Virus record (IMG/VR): IMGVR_UViG_3300023179_005186
Location: 251,723-315,722 of that record
DNA length: 64,000 nucleotides
Direction: 5' to 3' (one strand)
The position numbers and the translations under genes were made by a program. A model generated the notes under the pieces. That model was not told where the DNA came from, made no database searches, and saw only the letters and a program-made list of their open reading frames with translations. Positions 26,741 through 60,498 of this stretch are shown here, piece by piece; the stretch's first letter is position 1; each line of letters begins with the position of its first letter.

Positions 26741-27106
26741 TTAATTATCAAAATTTTCATAATCATCATTTAATTTATTATTATAAAGTGAATTCATGCG
26801 AATAGCACAGGGACATACAAATCCTTCTTTTATTTTTTCTGAATTAATTTCAGGAATTACTGTATTACATTTTTTTTCATAATAATTAGATTTCAAATCA
26901 GGCATACCAAAACCTTCAATTTGACCACATTTTTTTTCATAATAATTAGATTTCAAATCAGGCATACCAAAACCTTCAATTTGACCACATTTTTTTTCAT
27001 AATAATTAGATTTTAAATCAGGCATACCAAAATTCTCTTTGCTATCTAATAAATAAATTATAATAACAATTACTAAAAGCCATAATATTAAAGCATTTTT
27101 ATCCAT
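26741..27106 (-). CDS. Small membrane-anchored protein with 20-aa tandem repeats
   Basis: N-terminal TM, KENF, three copies of FGMPDLKSNYYEKKC. Confidence 0.75.
   Translation of the reverse strand: MDKNALILWLLVIVIIIYLLDSKENFGMPDLKSNYYEKKCGQIEGFGMPDLKSNYYEKKCGQIEGFGMPDLKSNYYEKKCNTVIPEINSEKIKEGFVCPCAIRMNSLYNNKLNDDYENFDN
26867..27032. repeat. 60-bp coding tandem repeat, about 2.8 copies
   Basis: The 60-mers starting at 26881 and 26941 are identical; the third copy differs by one synonymous base at 27014. Confidence 0.95.
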
Positions 27107-28194: not shown

Positions 28195-28219
28195 CACCCA
28201 TTTACAAAAAAATGGGACA
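28195..28219 (+). repeat. Left TIR of element 1
   Basis: CACCCATTTACAAAAAAATGGGACA, inverted match to 32255-32279. Confidence 0.93.
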
Positions 28220-28222
28220 GTT

Positions 28223-29131
28223 TTATTTATGTTTTTTTAAAAATTCATTTGCTCTTAAAAACAAATAATTAATATAATTTTCTAAATGTTCTTTTTTAAT
28301 ATCATTTTTTATTATTTCTTTAGTATCTCTAATTATTTCCAAATAATTTTGAGGACTTTTTAATTTTAAATAATGTTTTAATTGATTAAATAAACCCTCA
28401 ATCGGATTTGTATTAGGTCTATATCTTACACTATACAAATAATTATTTTCCGTCTCTTCTATTTTACTTTTCACTTCTTTTGATTTATGAAATATTGCAT
28501 TATCTAATATTATTACATGATTTTTATATTTATCTTCTATAAATTCCTCAATAAAACTTATAAATTTTTCTTTATTTATTCCTCCTGTTTCTTCATAAAT
28601 TTTTATTCCTATTATTTTTCCATATTTTATTGCACATAAACAATTATATTTTTTATATGGATATAAACCAGTATTATAATATGCTCTTCTTCCTTTATCA
28701 TTTCTTCCATGTTCTCTAACCATATTTACATAAATTGCTGTTTCATCTATTGATATTATTTTATCTTTTGAATGTTTAATAAGTATTTTATAAAATGTTT
28801 TTAATTCTTGTATTTCATTACCTTTTGATGGAAAATATCTATGTCTTAATTTTTTATATGTTATATTTAGTTCTTTTGCTAATTGTTTTAATGTTACATT
28901 TGGATGTTCTTTTATATGTTGTTTTATAAATTTTTTTTGTTCTTCATTAAATATAATTTTCTTTTTACTATGTTTTTTTTCTAAATTGTTAGTTTTACTA
29001 TATTTATCAACCCACCTATTTAATGATGATTTTGAGCATTTAAAAATATCACAAGTTTTTCTATAACTTTGATTATCTAAATAATATTTTACTGCTGTTA
29101 ATTTATAATCTATAGAATGATGACTACTCAT
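28223..29131 (-). CDS. IS630/Tc1-like DD34E transposase (apparently missing about 20 aa of the second HTH)
   Basis: N-terminal HTH, ISIDET, ILDNA, 34 residues, NPIE. Confidence 0.92.
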   Translation of the reverse strand: MSSHHSIDYKLTAVKYYLDNQSYRKTCDIFKCSKSSLNRWVDKYSKTNNLEKKHSKKKIIFNEEQKKFIKQHIKEHPNVTLKQLAKELNITYKKLRHRYFPSKGNEIQELKTFYKILIKHSKDKIISIDETAIYVNMVREHGRNDKGRRAYYNTGLYPYKKYNCLCAIKYGKIIGIKIYEETGGINKEKFISFIEEFIEDKYKNHVIILDNAIFHKSKEVKSKIEETENNYLYSVRYRPNTNPIEGLFNQLKHYLKLKSPQNYLEIIRDTKEIIKNDIKKEHLENYINYLFLRANEFLKKHK

Positions 29132-30031: not shown

Positions 30032-32221
30032 ATGAGTATTCCAAAAAAACCACCCGATAAATTTATCACCATTAAATATGTTTTGGATAAAATTATTATT
30101 AACGATAAACCTGATTGTGAATTAAAAAAAGATGATATTAAAACTATTTTAAATGATACTTGTTTTAGAACAAATCAAATTGTTATTCATACTTATCAAT
30201 TTTTAAGATTATGGATTTTAAATAAATATCATAATAAATTAGATATTCCTATTATCACAGAGGAGCTTATTAAAATGGTTATGAATACATTATCTATTAA
30301 AGATAATAGAGGTAATAAACCTACTGATGAAAATTTAATATTATTAAACGAATTTAATAAATTTTATGAAGAACATTATAAAAATTTAAATTATGAAAAT
30401 AAAATTAACAGTTCATATTTATCCCAAATAATTAATTCAATGGCTACTGATATACTTACCAACATTGAAAATAATATTAAAATGCATTTTTTAAAATATG
30501 TTAATAGATTTGTTAATTCATCATTTAAGAAAATAAATAATAATTTATTGGAAAAAGCAAAAGAAGGAACAAAAACAAAATTAAGAAAAGAATTAAATAA
30601 AGATCTATATGAAATTAAACAAGATTTAATTAATAATACATTGAAATCAAATGAAAAATATCATAAATGGATTAATTCCCATAGAGACAACATATTTCAT
30701 AAAGATTTTGTTAATTCCTATGAATTTGATATTCAAAATAATCCACAACGATATTTAAAATCAATGATTTATATGTGCGAACAAATAGAAAAATTAGAAA
30801 CAAAATCATTCCAGTTCTTTCCATTAAGAACAGATATTATAAACAAATTTATTCCGATTGACACCAAAAGTTTAATTGAATTATTTATTAAAAAAGATAA
30901 AGCAAAATATTTAGATGATGTTGAATCATATAAAGAACCTGTATGGTCTATGTTATTTGATATAAATAAAGATATGTTTAAACAATCAAATTATATATTT
31001 GATTATAAAATATATACAGATGGTTATTCGGTATCAATTCAAATGTTATTAAATGATAAAGTTAAAGATGAAAAACAAAAAAAACAAAATATGAAAAATA
31101 AAAGAAAAGAAAATAAAGAATTAACAAAAAATATGACTGAAGAACAAAAAACAGAATTTAAAAAGAAATGCGAGGAACAAAAGAAAAAACAAGATAAAGA
31201 GTTTAAATTAAAGTTAAAAGAGCAAAAAGATAAAGAGAAAGAAGAATTTAAAAAATTACCAAAAGAAGAACAAAATAAGATATTAGAAAAGAGAAAACAA
31301 GAAATTAAGGAAGCGAAAATATTAAATGGAACAGACTTTTTATATTTGGAAGATTTAAATGATAAACAATTAGAAGAAGTTAAAAATAATAATTTTTTAT
31401 GTTGCGATCCTGGAAAGAATACCTTACTCCATATGAAAGATAAAAATGGTAAAAAATACAGATATACAAACAGAAAGCATGCTAAATTAACTAAAAGATT
31501 AAAATATCAAAGACTTATTCAAAATTATAAAGATAAAAATGATATATCAAAAGTTGAAAATGAATTAACTAAATATAACTCAAGAACTTGTGATTTAAAT
31601 AAATTTAAAGAATTTATTAAAAATAAAAACAAAATTAATGCTATGTTATTTGAAAAGTATAATAAAGAAATATTTAGAAAATATAAATGGTATGGTTTTT
31701 TAAATAGAAAACACACAGAAACTAAAATGATAAAAGAAATTAAAAATACATTTGGTAAAAATTCAATAATATTTTATGGTGATTTTGGATTTAAAACAAA
31801 TTGTCATAAAGGTAATATATCAACACCAAATAATAGATTAAAAAGATTAATTGGAAAACAAATGAAATTATATAATTTAGATGAATTTAGAACCTCAAAA
31901 TTAAATTATAAAACAGAAGAAGTGTGTGAAAATTTATATTTACTAGATTTAAAAGGAAAGTCAAGAAAATTACATTCAGTTTTAACATATAAAATGGAAA
32001 ACAAACAAATTGGATGTATAAATCGTGATGAGAATGCGGTAAATAACATGATAAAAATAGTAAATCATTATCTGAATAAAAAAGAGAGATTATTAAAATA
32101 TCGAAGGGATTATGATTTAGAGAAAGGCGAATTAAAAGCTGAAACCAAACAAAAGGTGATAACCTCCATCAAAAATGACACTAAAAATCGGGAGGTCAAG
32201 TATCAACCATGCTCGAAATGA
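30032..32221 (+). CDS. Fanzor (TnpB-like) RNA-guided RuvC endonuclease
   Basis: TDGYSVS, RuvC-I CCDPG, YGDF, RuvC-II DEFRTSK, RuvC-III NRDENAVNNM; located next to the right TIR. Confidence 0.92.
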   Translation: MSIPKKPPDKFITIKYVLDKIIINDKPDCELKKDDIKTILNDTCFRTNQIVIHTYQFLRLWILNKYHNKLDIPIITEELIKMVMNTLSIKDNRGNKPTDENLILLNEFNKFYEEHYKNLNYENKINSSYLSQIINSMATDILTNIENNIKMHFLKYVNRFVNSSFKKINNNLLEKAKEGTKTKLRKELNKDLYEIKQDLINNTLKSNEKYHKWINSHRDNIFHKDFVNSYEFDIQNNPQRYLKSMIYMCEQIEKLETKSFQFFPLRTDIINKFIPIDTKSLIELFIKKDKAKYLDDVESYKEPVWSMLFDINKDMFKQSNYIFDYKIYTDGYSVSIQMLLNDKVKDEKQKKQNMKNKRKENKELTKNMTEEQKTEFKKKCEEQKKKQDKEFKLKLKEQKDKEKEEFKKLPKEEQNKILEKRKQEIKEAKILNGTDFLYLEDLNDKQLEEVKNNNFLCCDPGKNTLLHMKDKNGKKYRYTNRKHAKLTKRLKYQRLIQNYKDKNDISKVENELTKYNSRTCDLNKFKEFIKNKNKINAMLFEKYNKEIFRKYKWYGFLNRKHTETKMIKEIKNTFGKNSIIFYGDFGFKTNCHKGNISTPNNRLKRLIGKQMKLYNLDEFRTSKLNYKTEEVCENLYLLDLKGKSRKLHSVLTYKMENKQIGCINRDENAVNNMIKIVNHYLNKKERLLKYRRDYDLEKGELKAETKQKVITSIKNDTKNREVKYQPCSK

Positions 32222-32296
32222 GTGCAATTATACCTTTAATTTACAAAAAAAGAGTGTCCCAATTTTTTGTAAATGGGTGTAATATCACTTTTATAA
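32150..32296 (+). ncRNA. Putative omegaRNA of element 1 (scaffold to 32279, guide from the flank); boundaries approximate
   Basis: Stems 32152-57/32232-37, 32162-67/32191-96, 32211-14/32220-23 and 32239-50/32263-74; loop-loop pair GACACT/AGTGTC. Confidence 0.7.
32255..32279 (-). repeat. Right TIR of element 1
   Basis: TGTCCCAATTTTTTGTAAATGGGTG followed by TA. Confidence 0.93.
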
Positions 32297-38593: not shown

Positions 38594-38706
38594 CTATATG
38601 TTACTAATATCCATTTTACTTTTTATTATATTAATAATTTCGTTAGTAACTTTACTAATTGTGATTTTTATTAATATATCAATTCTTTTTTTTTTATTAC
38701 TTTTTA
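38594..38706 (-). pseudogene. 3' end of the gene interrupted by element 2
   Basis: After excision ...ELTIL continues as KSNKKKRIDILIKITISKVTNEIINIIKSKMDISNI* with the stop at 38594. Confidence 0.75.
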
Positions 38707-38731
38707 CACCTTTGCACATTTAAAATGCTGA
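38707..38731 (+). repeat. Left TIR of element 2
   Basis: CACCTTTGCACATTTAAAATGCTGA, inverted match to 44746-44770. Confidence 0.93.
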
Positions 38732-38748
38732 CCTTTTAAATATGCAAA

Positions 38749-39765
38749 TTATTTATAATTTTTTAATGTTTTTCTTCTATTTGAAGGTTTCTTAACATAT
38801 TTTTCAGTTCTATTATATGTTCCTTTTATGATATTTTCATATTTTTCTTTTGGTATTTCTTTAACTACCTTATTAATATTTTCTTTTAGTTCTTTATGAG
38901 TTAAACCATCTAATTTATACAATCTTGATTTCATCATACTAAAGTAATTTTCAATACTATTTGTAAAATGTTGATATGGAACACTATATAATAATGTGTT
39001 ATGCTTATTCACTAATTCCTTTATTTTTGCGTTTCTATGACTACTTGCATTATCTAAAATTATTAATTTATTTTTATATTTTGTAGTAATGTGTTTTTCT
39101 AAAAATTCATATAATCTATCACTATCAATGCCACCTTTTTCATATAAATCCCAACCTAAAACACCATTATAAGATATTGCAAATATTCCAGTATATTTTT
39201 TGAATACTTCTTGTGATTGTGTTTTTATTACACATCTTTTACCTAATTCACTATAATATTGATGTCTTTTCTGTAATCCACTAATACTTGTCTCATCAAT
39301 ACATATAATATCTTCTAATTTATGCTTTTTTATTTCATCATAGAATTCTTTTAATTTTTGATTTATATTTATTTCTTTTCCAAATCTCTTTTCTGGTTCA
39401 TGTCTTATTCTTGTTATTTTTAATGTAATATTGTTATCATTAACAATTCTATTGATATGAAAACGACTTAATTCAATCTTAAAATTTTCTTTTAATTTAT
39501 GTTTTAATTCTGTAATTGTAATTGTTTTATTCTTTTTAATTTCATATAATAAAAATTTAACATGTTCTTTATGAACTTTATATGCAACTGGTTTTCTATT
39601 TTCTCTTTTTATTTCACCATCTTTTTTATATTTTTCAACCCATCTTATTAAACTTCTTGGACTACATTTAAATATTTCACATACTTCTAATTGTAATTTA
39701 TCACCGACCAAATAATATTCTACGGCAGATAATTTATAATCTTCGCTTTTATGTTTAGATGTCAT
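38749..39765 (-). CDS. IS630/Tc1-like DD33E transposase
   Basis: N-terminal HTHs, ICIDET, ILDNA, 33 residues, NSIE. Confidence 0.93.
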   Translation of the reverse strand: MTSKHKSEDYKLSAVEYYLVGDKLQLEVCEIFKCSPRSLIRWVEKYKKDGEIKRENRKPVAYKVHKEHVKFLLYEIKKNKTITITELKHKLKENFKIELSRFHINRIVNDNNITLKITRIRHEPEKRFGKEININQKLKEFYDEIKKHKLEDIICIDETSISGLQKRHQYYSELGKRCVIKTQSQEVFKKYTGIFAISYNGVLGWDLYEKGGIDSDRLYEFLEKHITTKYKNKLIILDNASSHRNAKIKELVNKHNTLLYSVPYQHFTNSIENYFSMMKSRLYKLDGLTHKELKENINKVVKEIPKEKYENIIKGTYNRTEKYVKKPSNRRKTLKNYK

Positions 39766-39829
39766 ATACTTAATATTATGGCATAAAATATTTAAAATTA
39801 TGTTATAATATAATTATAGTAAATAAAAT

Positions 39830-40094
39830 ATGAATGAAGAAATTGATATTTTGAAACTTGAAATTGAAGAACTCAAAAAAAAAGAATGTTGAGTTAGAAG
39901 AAAAATTAAAGTTATATACTAATCCAGAACGGAATAAAAAATATTATGAAAAGAATAGTAATGTTGTTAAAGAAAAAGCAAAAACGTATATGGAGAAAAT
40001 AAAAGAAACAAATCCAGAAAAATTAAAAGAATGGAGACATACAGCATACTTAAATAGAAAGGCAAAATTAAAAAGTCAAACTGAAATTAATTAA
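39830..40094 (+). pseudogene. Small coiled-coil/basic cargo gene (about 87 aa) with a frameshift in an A9 tract
   Basis: ATG 39830 MNEEIDILKLEIEELKK, A9 at 39875-39883, continues in the +1 frame as NVELEEKLKLYTNPER. Confidence 0.7.
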
Positions 40095-40755
40095 TAAAAT
40101 TTTCATATTCATTATTTTTACACATATAAATATTTTGAATAATATTGTCTGTTTTTATTTTTTCAATATTATTTATTAATTCAGTTTTCCAATCATATAT
40201 ATCGTTGAATACATCTGATTGTAATATACGAATAACAGAATAACCATTATTATTTGCGCATTTTTCTTTGTATTTATCATTTTCTAATTGTTCTTCTGGA
40301 GATGACCAATTGCTTACTTGTTCAAAATGTTGTCTTCCATCAAGTTCAATAATAATTTTATTTTCTTCAATACAAAAGTCAAAAGGAATAAATCTTATAT
40401 TTTTACACCAAACAACTTTATATTGCTTTATTATATTTACATATATATTATATAAATATTCATATAATATTGTTTCAGTTTTATTTTGACAATGAGGACA
40501 ACCAGTATTATTAGATAAATATTTATTATAATCATTTCCACATTTATCGCAATCAAATATAAATTCTTTATAACAAACTTTAAAAACATTTCGTGGTTTA
40601 ATAATATTTTTTATGCTCCACTTTATAACATCTTTGTGAGATGCATATGATTTATTGAAACAATCAAGACAGTCTTCATTATAACATAATTTTTTATTTG
40701 CACAATAAGGACACCAAACACCATTGTTACAATAAAGAAATATTATAAAGCAATT
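40087..40755 (-). pseudogene. 3' part of a zinc-ribbon-repeat plus Vsr/DUF559-like endonuclease; absent from the ORF track
   Basis: Open frame with no usable start: WCPYCANKKLC, KSYASHK, WSIKN, CDKC, CPHC, KTE, FIPFDFCI, IIIELDGRQHF, GYSVIRI. Confidence 0.85.
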
Positions 40756-40803
40756 TTAACTTTTTAAGCATTATAAATTTTTTATCTAATATACTATTAT
40801 AAT

Positions 40804-41333
40804 ATGAATATTTTTAAAACATTAATACATAAGAAAATCAAATATAAATATGTTTTTGTGATATTTGCGGACTAATTTCATTTTTTAAATTAGATAAAAA
40901 ATTTATTACTAATTTTGAAAGTTTATTAAAGAAACATAGACCAAGTGATATAAATTTTACTTATACAAAAATTTTAGATGAAGATATTTTGTCATACCTA
41001 AATTATAATCATAAAGTTTTTTATCAAATTATATACAACCCTGTTAATTATGATATTATTACAATTGCTAGTATATCAATGATTTCGATCGATAAATGTG
41101 TTTTAACAATGGTACACACTAATGAGAAATACAGAAATCTAAAATTTTGTCAAAAAAATATTAATTTACTTATTAAAAATATGTTTGATAATTTTAAAAA
41201 TATTAAAAAATATATTTTGTATGTCGATAAGGACAATATATATGCAATTAAATGTTATGAAAAATGTAATTTTATTATAATTGAACTTAAGAAAGATAAT
41301 AAATATTTAATGGAATTAAATAAAATAAGATAA
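40804..41333 (+). pseudogene. GNAT acetyltransferase with a frameshift near 40853-40857 (captured DNA)
   Basis: VHTNEKYRNLKFC and LYVDKDNIYAIKCYEKCNF; upstream ATG 40804 is one base short of frame. Confidence 0.7.
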
Positions 41334-41344
41334 ATTTACTGATA

Positions 41345-42474
41345 TTAAATTAGTTCACCAACACCAACAATTGTTATCATTGGTTGTTTTCTACAAATTA
41401 AAATTTTTGAATCTTTACTAATGCATGTTGGTTTAATTAATTGTATTGAAAACCTTGTTCCTTTAATTTTTGTAAGTCGAGCTTCAGATGTCATATTTTC
41501 AATTTGTAAAAATATTTGATCTCCATTTTTTGGTTCCCATATGTCATTAATTTTTGTAAATTGAATATCAATGTCATGATAAACCTCTGGTAATTGTCCT
41601 ACAGGTCCTAGTACATTTCCACATAACATATTATTACCTTTACAAAAATACGGATCAACAGTTGTACGAATAGCAACTAATCCACCTGGATTTATTTCTT
41701 CAATAATATTATTATTAGTTTCAAATGATAATGTTGTTAAAATTGGTTCAGAAGTATATCTTCCATTTTTACCTTTTGTTAAAATACCAGGTCTTATTTC
41801 AACTTCATCATTAATTTTTAAATTTCCTGAAACTAATGTTCCTCCTAAACATCCACCTAATACTTCATTATATGGCGTACCTGGTTTATTAATATCAAAT
41901 GTTCTTGTAATTCTGAATAATGTATTTCCTGTTGAAGTTTGATTATTACTAAAATATTTATCAATTGCTTCAATAAGAAAATTTTTACCACAACTGTTTG
42001 TAAATGATGTGGGTATAATAATATTAGGTATAATTCCTAATTCTAATAAAATATCATTTAATTCATTATATCTTTCAATAACAATACTTTTACTTTGTAA
42101 ATCACATTTATTCAAACAAATAATTATATTGGAGATATTTGCCAATTTAGCTGTTAATAAATGTTGTCTTAGTTGAGGTTTTTCTTTTAAACTGGTTTCT
42201 ACTGAAACAATTACGATTGCTCCTTTCATTAACGCTACTGAACTCATCATTGTTGTTATTAATTCCTGATGCCCAGGGCAATCGGCAAATGAAATATATT
42301 TAATTAAATTACAATTATTACTACATGTTTCACAATTATATTCTAATAATTTTTCTCCTGATGAATATTTAGCTTGACAAATATCACACTTCCAAATTTT
42401 TAAATTTGCATAACCAGCATTAATTGTAATATTTTTAATTAATTATCTACTATCTCGTTGTGTTTTTCTCCGGT
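41345..42474 (-). pseudogene. EIF2S3: 5'-truncated translation initiation factor eIF2-gamma (captured DNA)
   Basis: NITINAGYAN, Zn knuckle CDIC/CETC, SFADCPGH, NKCD, RTFDINKPG, GGCLGG, EIRPG; no G1 P-loop; in-frame TAA at 42443-42445. Confidence 0.9.
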
Positions 42475-42572
42475 TTAATATTTTCAGGTTTTAATTCATT
42501 TTTATCGCTCCAATATTTTGCTTTTTCATGTGATGCAAATGATTTTTCAAAAGGTATTTTATTATCTGTCAT
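42474..42572 (-). pseudogene. 5' end of the split zinc-ribbon endonuclease gene
   Basis: MTDNKIPFEKSFASHEKAKYWSDKNELKPENIK matches the internal repeat KSYASHKDVIKWSIKNIIKPRNV of 40087-40755. Confidence 0.8.
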
Positions 42573-42610
42573 TATATAATTTAATAATTATTAATTTATA
42601 TAATTTTATA

Positions 42611-42618
42611 TCAATTTT
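42611..42618 (-). promoter_or_regulatory. Early promoter AAAATTGA for the element-2 endonuclease gene
   Basis: Octamer 38 nt upstream of ATG 42572. Confidence 0.7.
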
Positions 42619-42681
42619 TTATTAATAATTTTTAATGCGTAAAACTATTTAAAATATAATCTTTAGTAATAATATATAGAA

Positions 42682-44676
42682 ATGAAAAAATCAAAACCAA
42701 AAGTTAAAGAAAAGAAAAAAGATGAAGAAAATTTTGATTACATGAAAACTAATAAGGACAATATTAAGAATGTTATAAGAGATAATGATTTATTACCAGT
42801 TATTAATGATATTACCATAAGAACCAATAAAATTGTTATTCATTCATACCAATTCTTAAAATTATATTTATTGCATCTTTATGAAAATAATCAACCTTTT
42901 CCAGTTTTAGATAAAGAATATATTTGTGATATTTTTAAAGTTATTACAAAACGTAAATGTAATAGTGGTGGTTATACTGAAGAAAAAATGCCTCAACAAT
43001 TAAAAACACTAAATGACTTTTATAAAAATCATTATTTATTAACTATTGCTAATAATGAAGTTCTTTATTATGATAAATTATCATATATTCTTGCTTATGA
43101 AGCGATAGATATGATTACTAATATTACAAATAATATTCAAGAACATTTTATTGACCATCTTAATAGATATGTTAATATTGTATTTGATATTAAGGCAAAA
43201 CGTGAAGAAATAACTAAAAATAATAAAGATAAGGAAATTAGAAAGCAATTACATAAGGTATTATATGAAGAAATAAATAAAGTTAAGAAAGATTTAATTA
43301 CATTTGGAGAATTTACAAGTGATGTTAAATATCATAATTGGATTAAGGAACAAAAATTAAAATTATTTCCAAATAAAACAGAATTTGAAGAAAATAATAT
43401 TTATTATGAACTTAAATTAAATACACAATACTTTCTTTATGGTATGTTTCATATTTCAACTGAATTAGAAAAAAACAATAATATAAGAATTCAAAATGAT
43501 GAAAAACAAATAAGATTATTTAATGTATTACCATTAAGAACTAATATTATTCCTAAAAATGTATGTATAGACACATGTGGATTAATTCAAAATTTTATGG
43601 GTGATGAATACGATAGCAAATTATTAACAACTTATAAAAAAGAAAATAAATATTTTGAATTATGGAATAAATATTTTAAGTTAAATAAAAGAGTATTCAA
43701 AAAAGGTAAAAATTATACATTTTCTTACATGATAAGAACTGATGGTATATCATGCTGTGTATTATTTGTAAAAGTTGATAAAAATGGAAAACCATTAGCA
43801 AAAACATATGCAAATAAAAAATGTTGTCAAGAAGAAAATATTGATTATATTGAAAAAGCAAATGTAGATAATATTAAACATAAAAAGTTTGTTGTTGCTG
43901 ACCCCAATTACAGCGATTTAATATATTGTGGTTATAAAGATGAAAATGATAATTTAATAACATTTCGTTATACACAAAACCAAAGAAGATTAGAAACACG
44001 AATGAAAAAATATAGTAAAATTAAAGATAAATTAAATAAAGAAACTATTATAAATGAAAAGTCAGTAAAAGAATTAGAAACAACACTATCAAAATTAAAT
44101 TCAAAAACATGTTCTTATGACAAATTTAAAACATATTGTGTTGAAAAGAATAAATTAAATTATCAACTATATTCACATTATGAACAAAGATGTTTTAGAA
44201 AATTTAAATTAAATGCATTTACAAATACTCAAAAAAGCGAAAATAAAATGATAAATAATTTTCAAAAAAAATATGGAAAACCAGAAGAAACTATATTTGT
44301 TATGGGAGATTACGATAAAGGCGATTATAATATGAAGGGAAAAGAACCAGTAATATGTAAAAAATTTAGAAGAATATTTAGAAATGCTGGTTATACCACA
44401 TTTTTAGTAAATGAATTTAGAACATCAAAATTATGTAATTGTTGTAATGCAGAATTAGAATATTTTTTGGAAAGACCAAGCAAGAAACCAAAATTAATAA
44501 AAGAGGGAAAAACAGAAATATGTCATGGATTATTACGATGTAAGTCGGTTAAGCATAAAAGCGAAATATTCCATAACAGAGATAAGAATGCTGTGCAAAA
44601 TATGTTAAATATAGTCAAATCGGTTCTACGAACAGGAAAACGACCAGATATATTTTGTAGAGAAATACATTCTTAA
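42682..44676 (+). CDS. Fanzor (TnpB-like) RNA-guided RuvC endonuclease
   Basis: RTDGISC, RuvC-I VADPN, MGDY, RuvC-II NEFRTSKLCNCC, HGLLRC, RuvC-III NRDKNAVQNM. Confidence 0.93.
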   Translation: MKKSKPKVKEKKKDEENFDYMKTNKDNIKNVIRDNDLLPVINDITIRTNKIVIHSYQFLKLYLLHLYENNQPFPVLDKEYICDIFKVITKRKCNSGGYTEEKMPQQLKTLNDFYKNHYLLTIANNEVLYYDKLSYILAYEAIDMITNITNNIQEHFIDHLNRYVNIVFDIKAKREEITKNNKDKEIRKQLHKVLYEEINKVKKDLITFGEFTSDVKYHNWIKEQKLKLFPNKTEFEENNIYYELKLNTQYFLYGMFHISTELEKNNNIRIQNDEKQIRLFNVLPLRTNIIPKNVCIDTCGLIQNFMGDEYDSKLLTTYKKENKYFELWNKYFKLNKRVFKKGKNYTFSYMIRTDGISCCVLFVKVDKNGKPLAKTYANKKCCQEENIDYIEKANVDNIKHKKFVVADPNYSDLIYCGYKDENDNLITFRYTQNQRRLETRMKKYSKIKDKLNKETIINEKSVKELETTLSKLNSKTCSYDKFKTYCVEKNKLNYQLYSHYEQRCFRKFKLNAFTNTQKSENKMINNFQKKYGKPEETIFVMGDYDKGDYNMKGKEPVICKKFRRIFRNAGYTTFLVNEFRTSKLCNCCNAELEYFLERPSKKPKLIKEGKTEICHGLLRCKSVKHKSEIFHNRDKNAVQNMLNIVKSVLRTGKRPDIFCREIHS

Positions 44677-44788
44677 AATTCATATCCGTTTCAAGACGGA
44701 TTATAATCAAATTTTTGCATTTTTGTTTATTTTTTCGTCGTTAATTCGGCGTTTTAAATGTGCAAAGGTGTAAAATAGTTAATTCTTT
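44677..44788 (+). ncRNA. Putative omegaRNA of element 2 (scaffold to 44770, guide from the flank); boundaries approximate
   Basis: Hairpin ATCCGT 44684-89/ACGGAT 44696-701; CGTCG 44736-40/CGGCG 44747-51; enclosing stem TTTGCA 44714-19/TGCAAA 44761-66. Confidence 0.65.
44746..44770 (-). repeat. Right TIR of element 2
   Basis: TCGGCGTTTTAAATGTGCAAAGGTG followed by TA. Confidence 0.93.
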
Positions 44789-45660
44789 CTTTTTATCTTG
44801 TGTATTTTTATTCTCTAATAATTTTTTCTCAATTTCATTTACAGAAATAACTTTGACTGATTCTATATTTGCTTTTTTAGATTTCTTCTTTTTAAAATTA
44901 TTTATAATTTCACAATATTTTAAAGATTCATTTACATCAAATCCATCATCATCTTTATGAAGATAAGGACAACCTAAATTGATACGACGACAGCCTTCAA
45001 TTTTAGATTCATCAGCACAAGATTTTTTTTTACTAATGTTTCTTGATTCTAAAGACATTCTTTCAGAAGATAATCTTTTCCTATTTTCACAAAGTTTTTT
45101 TAATGCAATATCTGCATCAAATTTATGATTACAAATTATATCATCTCTAATTAAAATCAGTACATCAAAAACAGTTTGAATTATCGCCAATGCTGTATTT
45201 TCATCAGTTCTGGTTATATTATTATTCATTATATTATTATCTAAATGAACTCCCATACATCCAAAATCTCTTAAAATTCTTAAAGGATTAGAAAGAATTT
45301 TATTCATTTGAGTTATTTTATGAATAGCTTCTCCCAAATTAATTGGTCTTTCTCCTAACATATAGGTACAAACAGCTTCAACGATAACTCTGGCTTCCAT
45401 TGCAACAGGATCAAATAATTGTTTTGATGCATAATCCTGAATATTCCACATGGATTTTGCCAATAAAATTACTACTTTTTTATAATCATCAAGCTTAAAT
45501 CCTTTATTAATTGATGATTCAGATATGGCCATAACGCCAATAAACCAAAATAAATCTCTAGTATCTTCCCATTCAAAAAAATCAAACTTTAGCTTTCCCT
45601 TTTTTTTTCAAGAGGAGGACCTGGGAAATGCCAAGGTAATGTATTTTTATCATACTCCAT
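44771..45660 (-). pseudogene. Gene interrupted by element 2: DUF4145/HEPN-like domain plus a CCCH-like finger
   Basis: ARVIVEAVC, LRDFGCMGVH, CADESKIEGCRRINLGCPYLH; likely true start ATG 45660, one base off at the A9 tract 45600-45608; AAAATTGA at 45749-45756. Confidence 0.6.
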
Positions 45661-59464: not shown

Positions 59465-59483
59465 AATTTTTATATAAAAATTT
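59464..59483. terminator. Perfect 20-bp palindrome between convergent genes (possible hairpin-rule 3' end signal)
   Basis: AAATTTTTATATAAAAATTT is its own reverse complement; A/T only, so chance cannot be excluded. Confidence 0.35.
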
Positions 59484-60498
59484 ATTTTATTTCTAATAAT
59501 TTTTTTTTAAGATTAGGTGATGCATATTTTAAAAAAGATTCAGATCTTTTGATTGCTAATGATACTATTTCTAAATTATTTTTAAGATTAGGAGATACAT
59601 ATTTTAAAGCTGAACCACATCTTGAAACAGCGATCATTGTAATATGAAAATTATTTTTAAGATTTTCAGAGGCATATTTTAAAACTGCTCCGGATTTTTT
59701 AACAGCAGTATGAACAATCTTAAAATTATTTTTAAGATTATCAGAGGCATATCTTAATGTAGATGGGTCTTTTTTAACAGCAGTATAAATTATTTTAAAA
59801 TTATTTCTAAGATTTTTAGAAGCAAATTGAATAGAATTACTAGAATTATTAATAGCAGTTAAAACAATTTTATAGTCATTTTGTAGATCTTCAGAAATAA
59901 ACTTTAAAGCATATCCATCTTTTTTAACAGCAAACATTGCTATTTCATAATAATTTATTATTGTATTTGAAACATATTTTAATGCAAAAATACTATTTTT
60001 AATTGCATTTAATACAACTTCTGGATCATTTTTAAGATTAGGAGAAGCATATTCTAAGGATAATCCGCATTTACTAACTGCTGTTAATACAATTTCTTTA
60101 TCATCTCTAAATTGTTCAGGAACATAATTTAAATATGAACCAAACATTTTTACTGCAGTTAATGTGATTTCTCTATTAGATTTTATTCTATAAGATAAGT
60201 TAGAGTAATTTAATTTATTATTATTTAAAGAATATATTACAAATTGTATTTCTTCTAAATTTAATGGTATTTTATTATAAGTATTTTTTATTAATTCTTT
60301 ATCTTCATCAGATAATTTATTTCTAAATGGATCTTCATCATTTTTCATACAAATAACCCATTTATAAATATTTTTAACATTATATATATAATTATTAATT
60401 TTTATATTTTCTTCGGGTATTATCACTTGAAATAAAATTGGATCAATAAATTTACCTTCTTTATTTTTTTCATTAAAAATTACTGTTTCATCATCCAT
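59482..60498 (-). CDS. DUF4116-repeat protein with a U-box-like N-terminus
   Basis: About nine 25-aa repeats (IV.TAVK...L.YAS.NLKNN); FIDPILF...IYKW...DPFR; AAAATTGA at 60550-60557. Confidence 0.8.
   Translation of the reverse strand: MDDETVIFNEKNKEGKFIDPILFQVIIPEENIKINNYIYNVKNIYKWVICMKNDEDPFRNKLSDEDKELIKNTYNKIPLNLEEIQFVIYSLNNNKLNYSNLSYRIKSNREITLTAVKMFGSYLNYVPEQFRDDKEIVLTAVSKCGLSLEYASPNLKNDPEVVLNAIKNSIFALKYVSNTIINYYEIAMFAVKKDGYALKFISEDLQNDYKIVLTAINNSSNSIQFASKNLRNNFKIIYTAVKKDPSTLRYASDNLKNNFKIVHTAVKKSGAVLKYASENLKNNFHITMIAVSRCGSALKYVSPNLKNNLEIVSLAIKRSESFLKYASPNLKKKLLEIK

Follow-up and report, generated by a model that had tools for sequence, protein, structure and literature searches.

The DNA analysed here (the window) makes up the final 64 kb of a 315,722-bp IMG/VR virus record; its G+C content is 20%, and the relatives of the source record are freshwater giant-virus metagenome bins. 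Within it, a Tc1/mariner-like transposon of approximately 6.06-6.07 kb, which we call element 2, sits at a TA in the giant-virus genome, with a proper span of 38707-44770 (CACC...GGTG). Its left part carries, on the minus strand, a transposase gene (38749..39765) whose 338-aa product combines an N-terminal HTH, with Pfam matches to HTH_28 and HTH_32, and a DDE_3 domain of the Tc1/mariner/IS630 type (Pfam DDE_3, E 2.2e-15); the ORF is of equal length in sister elements. Its right part carries, on the plus strand, the gene of a 664-aa Fanzor1 nuclease (42682..44676), for which the best solved homolog is the Fanzor1 of Spizellomyces punctatus (SpuFz1, 8gkh; phmmer E 1.4e-44). The RuvC D/E/D motifs ADPN, NEFRTS and NRD align with IDPN, DEYKTS and NRD of SpuFz1, and the protein also has a Pfam TNB match (Cas12f1-like_TNB) that falls below the curated cut-off.

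Complete sister elements have the transposase module at the left, the Fanzor module at the right and a variable cargo ORF between them, and some sisters are without the transposase. The cargo is a single ORF of 457-591 aa in the sisters, and in three close relatives (457-502 aa) it matches DUF723 or DUF7487. In element 2 the cargo region (40721..42486) is replaced or broken: approximately 1.77 kb with a GNAT fragment (40989-41333, plus strand) and an N-terminally truncated eIF2-gamma-like fragment (41345-42250, minus strand) takes the place of the middle of the sisters' ORF. In the closest relatives, L201 (3682-4697) and L203 (3532-4456), the transposase is in fragments and the Fanzor is intact, and in elements of this type the Fanzor seems to outlast the transposase.

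The family is large. A query with the Fanzor protein retrieved 77 loci in viral contigs at 53-92% identity, a query with the TIR pattern retrieved more than 100 further loci, and three closer relatives, with Fanzors 94-96% identical and at other insertion sites, were added to these. When 8000 candidates were scored, at least 633 protein clusters were related to the Fanzor at E 1e-10 or better, and their names in the sources say nothing beyond "hypothetical protein". Nine elements with related TIRs (L090, L116, L114, L126, L140, L141, L151, L159 and L183) carry Fanzors that are only 29-31% identical to that of element 2; in L090 and L116 the transposase is nevertheless 73% identical to that of element 2, which suggests that Fanzor modules have been swapped within one transposon family.

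The uninterrupted orthologous site is present in a syntenic contig, L206, where it reads ...CTTTT TA AAATAA... (more fully ...CTTTT TA AAATAATTAATTCT...). The alignments of the two flanks of element 2 to this empty site overlap by exactly TA, which places the two copies of the target-site duplication at 38705..38706 and 44771..44772 and the ends of the element at 38707 and 44770; duplication models of none or of TTA were thereby ruled out. The same alignment identifies the gene at 44741..45532 (minus strand) as a viral gene cut off by the insertion, which reads through the right TIR and stops in the loop of a hairpin described below. A search of viral contigs returned no relatives of this flanking gene; its ortholog, P0122 (85% identical), came from the protein database, runs 38 codons further and lies at 4001-5038 of L206, and the 38 lost codons survive in the left flank as a remnant ORF (38594-38719, minus strand). 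In L206 the neighbouring genes follow directly, namely a 275-aa ORF, a DUF218 gene and a gene for a 717-aa UvrD helicase. For this Fanzor1 family, then, the transposon ends are fixed to the base and an actual empty target site is available. Across 37 sister elements the target consensus, TTTTT-AAAAT (38700-38706 and 44771-44777 in the window), is not a perfect palindrome, and the target is oriented: the base corresponding to 44776, beside the Fanzor end, is T in 24 of the 37, whereas its left mirror base is A in only 8.

The sequence TTTTACACCTTTGCACATTTAAAA occurs exactly twice in the window, at 38702-38725 (plus strand) and 44752-44775 (minus strand), where shuffled sequences lead one to expect 0 copies. 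A repeat search confined to 42000-45200 had found no TIR partner, the left end being 6 kb distant, at 38702; the partner came to light at 38696-38731 when 44677-44800 was reverse-complemented and aligned to the entire window. An earlier note, made from the letters of the window, had stated that the two TIRs differ at only two positions, and the alignment of the 30-nt repeat (38702-38731 against 44746-44775) bears this out to the base: the only mismatches are G44748 and G44751, where the left end has T38729 and T38726, which predict A. The left TIR proper (38707..38731, plus strand) accordingly runs CACC...TGCTGA, and the right TIR (44746..44770, minus strand) includes both G's in its CGGCG at 44747-51. 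In nearly all sisters both ends read ...CATTTAAAACGCCGA.

Between the stop codon of the Fanzor gene and the flanking DNA lie approximately 100 bases (44677-44775) that are very probably the guide-RNA scaffold of the nuclease. Our main reading, to which we assign a probability of roughly 0.8, is that an omegaRNA scaffold is encoded here in the sense of the Fanzor gene and that the asymmetry of the TIRs consists of two private changes in the left TIR. The sense strand of 44677-44775 has a predicted minimum free energy of -29.3 kcal/mol (z -6.3, with 0 of 200 shuffles as good), compared with -10.1 kcal/mol (z -0.8) for the antisense strand. Its first helix, SL1 (44684..44701, plus strand), pairs ATCCGT at 44684-89 with ACGGAT at 44696-44701 around the loop UUCAAG; it is present in the minimum free energy fold and, as the hairpin that the earlier note had placed 5' of the TIR structure, it turned out to be the best-supported helix of all. 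A linker, UAUAAUCAAA(U), follows at 44702..44713 (plus strand); its motif UAAYCAAAUUUUU is nearly invariant among 51 right ends of the family and is kept in loci with other TIRs. A search of 44300-45000 with the Rfam covariance models, at E values up to 1, gave no match.

The second helix, SL2, uses the transposon end itself. Its 5' arm (44714..44740, plus strand) repeats the right TIR in inverted, degenerate form, and through C-to-U and A-to-G changes that maintain the RNA pairing many of its pairs are G-U. Its 3' arm (44747-44775) consists of the right TIR, the TA duplication and three target bases. The tip of SL2 is the hairpin in which CGUCG (44736-40), the end of the 5' arm, pairs with CGGCG (44747-51) as C-G, G-C, U-G, C-G and G-C; G44748 and G44751 face C44739 and C44736, just as had been predicted. 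The stem in which this hairpin had been placed fared less well. TTTGCA (44717-22) and TGCAAA (44761-66) are both present, yet that register is the wrong one: it is paired in 73.5% of cells of the family alignment, 21-35 of the 51 sequences are unable to form its three inner pairs, and we rejected it as a conserved stem. Conserved instead is a shifted register, in which UUUUGCA (44714-20) pairs with UGUAAAA (44769-75) and the helix continues through U-G pairs. This register is kept in 90.9% of cells, with the outer six pairs of the SL2 base kept in approximately 97-100%, and it is the one used in the minimum free energy fold of the window, where it scores -4.6 kcal/mol against -0.1 kcal/mol for the TTTGCA/TGCAAA register.

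As the earlier note had suggested, the TIRs were aligned across the family and the pairs examined for covariation, and both hairpins proved to be kept by compensatory changes in 51-64 distinct sisters; these are related by descent, so that the counts of cells given here overstate the number of independent events. In the alignment of 51 distinct right ends, 98.7% of SL1 cells are paired; both partners have changed in five of the six pairs, and a single position can show as many as three kinds of Watson-Crick pair as well as one G-U pair. The CGTCG/CGGCG hairpin is paired in 95.3% of cells. The pair C44736-G44751 is CG in 23 ends, UA in 17 and UG in 8, and C44739-G44748 is UG in 31, CG in 19 and UA in one. 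RNAalifold, run independently, predicts just SL1 and the distal hairpin. A larger set of 64 distinct ends, aligned by fitting to a scaffold model and leaning towards it, has 13 pairs with changes on both sides and exceeds 500 of 500 shuffles on all five measures. The base of SL2 shows no covariation inside the close family, where the TIR tip is invariant, so that its covariation support comes from a few distant loci and from the model-fitted alignment. In one distant group with another TIR, UUUUAUAGCGGG pairs with CCCCGCUGUAAAA below a distal UGAUA/UGUCA hairpin. A natural minimal scaffold is found in L061 (7881-7949), which has SL1, the linker and a 9-bp SL2 (UUUUUACAC-loop-GUGUAAAAA) and is without both the distal hairpin and the inner TIR sequence.

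Could such stems arise by chance in DNA of this composition? Runs of U and A pair easily at 20% GC, a lone 5-bp stem is weak evidence, and two TIR mismatches could be random. We give this reading almost no credence, as the fold has a z of -6.3 and the covariation lies above all shuffles and all slid controls. On the comparative data, chance is refuted for the hairpins; the coincidence of the two mismatches, taken alone, stays ordinary.

The strand on which pairing is kept bears on a second alternative, namely that the inverted copy at the right end is a feature of the DNA, either a subterminal binding site for the transposase or a cruciform, with no role as RNA. Subterminal repeats are present in many DNA transposons, and at the left end of element 2, too, part of the TIR core recurs as an inverted copy (38711-25 with 38733-47). 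A G-U pair of the Fanzor-sense strand corresponds to an A-C mismatch in the opposite strand. In double-stranded DNA or a cruciform, pairing would not be expected to be kept on one strand only, whereas in the distal hairpin there are 69 G-U cells against three A-C cells, and in the SL2 base 83 against 19. Furthermore, a hand alignment of the DNA gives only about 17 matches in 29 bases between the 5' arm and the TIR, the antisense strand folds no better than shuffled sequence, and SL1 and the linker have no similarity to the TIR. The excess of G-U on the Fanzor-sense strand and the strand-specific fold point to an RNA of the sense strand rather than to a cruciform or a protein-bound repeat, and we consider the DNA feature highly improbable. 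Judged by the alignments, the Fanzor gene is followed by a conserved RNA element, structured on the sense strand and overlapping the right TIR. The Fanzor gene is covered by contigs of a freshwater metatranscriptome in which 76% of the sampled words are present, and their depth is highest over 44687-44783, at 1016 against 16.6 over the flanking gene. This depth is summed over all TIR-bearing copies, the contigs carry neither strand nor transcript ends and could stem in part from DNA, and the signal is at most suggestive of transcription.

Mimivirus transcripts have hairpin-dependent polyadenylation sites, and the hairpins after the Fanzor gene could be 3'-end signals for the mRNA of the Fanzor and of the converging gene in place of a guide scaffold. 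The structures do lie just past the stop codon, the CGTCG-loop-CGGCG hairpin followed by TTTT is terminator-like (two such arrangements found against 0.2 expected), and covariation demonstrates selection for pairing and not the reason for it. Against this reading, the loop of SL1 and the linker are nearly invariant among Fanzors down to 55% identity, and the design persists with other TIRs. The structure always adjoins the transposon end, its layout matches that of solved Fanzor1 omegaRNAs (PMC11423790), and among the loci examined for a Fanzor the model matches only Fanzor-side ends, with several weaker matches outside that set. For these reasons we regard a 3'-end signal in place of a scaffold as unlikely; the two roles are not exclusive.

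With the guide scaffold as the preferred reading, the question becomes what the two mismatched bases mean. The earlier note had proposed that RNA structure constrains the right TIR, in other words that selection for pairing holds G44748 and G44751 and that function keeps the two TIRs different. Several observations are in keeping with this proposal. The hairpin is conserved, and its right-end variants are compensated or form G-U pairs: where an aligned right end carries the left-type base at 44751, a U-A pair is formed in 17 of 17 cases, and the same holds for L012 at 44748, so that a sister with an uncompensated left-type base at the right end was not encountered. L032, which is misaligned in the 51-end set, gives TGCC/GGCA after re-registering by hand. 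Placing the left-type bases in the right TIR weakens the predicted fold from -29.3 to -20.8 kcal/mol. Finally, the left and right ends are discordant in approximately ten instances at TIR positions 23-28; about seven of these are derived at the left end and three at the right, and two of the latter three still pair.

The family as a whole nevertheless speaks against it. In 24 of 35 complete Fanzor-bearing elements the 28-nt left and right repeats are identical, and L201 and L203, the two closer relatives in which the left end could be read, with Fanzors 94% identical to that of element 2, have CGCCGA, with the right-type bases, at both ends; asymmetry is thus no feature of the family. Since such close relatives carry the right-type bases at both ends, it is the left TIR of the window that is the derived end, with two private C-to-T changes at CpG (T38726 and T38729, family consensus C), and the right TIR that has kept the consensus. 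The idea that the right TIR diverged to serve the RNA therefore fails. Both changes are CpG to TpG in a genome of 20% GC under strong AT pressure, and the only CpG sites of the repeat are those within CGCCG. Where the ends disagree at position 23 (G44751), the T is on the left in the window and L016 and on the right in L032 and L062. At position 26 (G44748) they disagree in the window, L014 and L049/L050, and each time it is the left end that has T. The two positions are among the most discordant of the TIR in the family, tied with position 12. For both of these reasons the location of both mismatches in a hairpin arm is a weaker coincidence than it appears. The numbers of left- and right-derived changes (about seven against three) are too few to show an extra constraint on the right end and are not significant.

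Where the TIR bases of the hairpin differ between lineages, the 5' arm has, by comparison of those lineages, changed to match: all members of a subfamily, marked GGAC, have TGCCGA in both TIRs and a UGCUG 5' arm that restores U-A pairing. The 5' arm thus follows the TIR and not the reverse, and we consider it doubtful that selection on the RNA holds the two right-end bases. The case illustrates how sequence in a TIR that the transposase needs can double as part of a guide RNA: the TIR stays symmetric, and the opposite arm of the stem adapts. It is also a caution for readings of a single sequence, in that a TIR difference in one copy is weak functional evidence and should be polarised with relatives first.

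A left/right asymmetry that fits an RNA constraint, and a stronger one than that of G44748 and G44751, lies just outside the transposon. The target-derived AAA at 44773..44775 (plus strand) pairs, together with the TA, with UUUU at 44714-17, and its last AA (44774-75) is invariant beside the Fanzor end: AA follows GGTGTAA in all 37 complete elements, which occupy distinct sites, whereas the mirror TT at the left is present in 24 of 37 (p 7e-5). It is conceivable, and we put it forward tentatively, that the UAAAA at 44771-75, formed by the TA duplication and the target, couples the target choice of the transposase (TTTT-TA-AAAT) to the folding of the guide RNA, such that only AAA-flanked insertions would give a working RNA, and that its G-U pairs would let the SL2 5' arm fold as RNA while sparing the DNA a third binding site for the transposase.

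Copies of the element are conserved as far as 44775, and the contigs of the other copies differ from 44776 onwards. On the model of known Fanzor1 omegaRNAs (PMC10432273), the predicted guide is TAGTTAATTC... (44776..44795, plus strand), and it may start at approximately 44776 or possibly at 44771. A guide start at 44776 would need a longer TAM against self-cutting, as the occupied and empty sites share TAAAA just upstream; with a start at 44771, if true, a T-rich TAM could tell the empty site from the occupied one. The earlier expectation of a guide of approximately (TA) followed by flank sequence, with a TAM ending in ...TTTA, is compatible with the empty site of L206 (TTTT-TA-AAA). We propose that a complex of the Fanzor and its omegaRNA would cut unoccupied copies of the site (...TTTT-TA-AAAT...), and that repair from an occupied genome copy would then lead to retention of the element.

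The predicted RNA resembles those of the solved Fanzor1 complexes. In published Fanzor1 omegaRNAs a short 5' tail precedes SL1, a 7-bp helix to which the RuvC and TNB domains bind, and a linker, SL2 and the guide come after it (Saito et al. 2023, PMC10432273; Xu et al. 2024, PMC11423790). The layout in SpuFz1 (PDB 8GKH) and PpFz1, with 6-7 bp and a 6-nt loop in SL1, followed by a linker, SL2 and a guide from the flank, matches the predicted fold of element 2, a resemblance and not a structural alignment, and in all three cases the RNA is located at the gene's 3' end and extends to the right end of the transposon. In SpuFz1 the distal part of SL2 is uncontacted by the protein and can be deleted (PMC10432273), and the SL2 of PpFz1 has only four pairs (PMC11423790). 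A distal SL2 that is variable or dispensable there has its counterpart in L061 of the element-2 family, which is naturally without it; by this analogy the distal hairpin may matter little for cleavage. Element 2 differs from SpuFz1 and PpFz1 in having a giant virus and not a fungus as host, in a scaffold that lies outside the ORF, and in the 3' arm of SL2, which joins the complete TIR of a TA-duplicating transposon to the target-derived UAAAA.

Fanzors are known to be associated with Mariner/Tc1 transposases, guide RNAs that overlap the inverted repeat or TIR have been reported, and viral Fanzors have been described (Jiang et al. 2023, PMC10530073). The same survey of Fanzor/fRNA loci covers Fanzor1c with Mariner/Tc1 as well as ApmFNuc of mimivirus, a Fanzor2 of an IS607 element (PMC10530073). 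ApmFNuc has a tail of approximately 200 nt, whereas element 2 has a Fanzor1, a DDE transposon and a tail of approximately 100 nt. As the link to Mariner/Tc1 and the TIR-overlapping guides are already in print, element 2 is a well-resolved further case of a published type. With the TnpB omegaRNA of IS200/IS605 (ISDra2) the RNA predicted for element 2 shares its derivation from the transposon end and the use of the flank as guide, and a likely role in cutting empty sites to retain the element is shared as well. In contrast to element 2, TnpB elements use a Y1 transposase and are without TIRs or a duplication, and their omegaRNA overlaps the ORF, contains a pseudoknot and is paired with a TAM that is the left-flank target. 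The transposon itself has the usual traits of Tc1/mariner/IS630 elements, that is an HTH and DDE_3 transposase, TIRs of 25-30 nt starting CA.., a TA duplication and an AT-rich, near-palindromic target; unlike the usual members, its family carries a Fanzor, a variable cargo gene, an RNA-coding right end and many short derivatives.

The window holds a second, diverged transposase/Fanzor pair, element 1, with the transposase at 28223-29131, the Fanzor at 30032-32221 and TIRs near 28195-28225 and 32253-32283 (TATTACACCCATTTACAAAAAAATGGGACA). Its two proteins are approximately 33-35% identical to those of element 2. Its Fanzor ORF contains a conserved stem of ACCUCC (32162-67) and GGAGGU (32191-96), with covariation in L232, and the non-coding tail is only about 62 nt long. 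The scaffold model of element 2 found no match at element 1, and with this and the position of the element-1 stem inside the ORF the two scaffolds are indeed unlike, as the earlier note had it; that the scaffold of element 2 is the more compact is plausible. In element 2 it measures approximately 97 nt, and in L061 approximately 65 nt from the start of SL1, and such compact natural variants may interest engineers of small editors. More broadly, a strongly supported predicted omegaRNA supplies a secondary structure backed by covariation for an abundant, unannotated Fanzor1 family in freshwater giant viruses.

Some minor features of the family and the window deserve mention. Two short elements of approximately 0.6 kb in the same genome, L003 (G000:C1:~129-734) and L004 (1501-2067; C1:175941-176507), have related TIRs and a small ORF and carry no Fanzor. 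A search with the scaffold model found no omegaRNA-like end in either, and we rejected them as Fanzor-less carriers of the RNA; similar short derivatives are many in other giant-virus contigs. At the left end of element 2 (38711-38747), just past the stop codon of the transposase, the inverted partial copy of the TIR core stands beside the TIR (TTTGCACATTTAAAA ... TTTTAAATATGCAAA) and is partly kept in sisters. Elsewhere in the window there are tandem repeats at 26867-27046, with three 60-nt copies of which two are identical, and at 59497-60082, with approximately seven 75-nt copies inside the ORF at 59482-60498 (minus strand).
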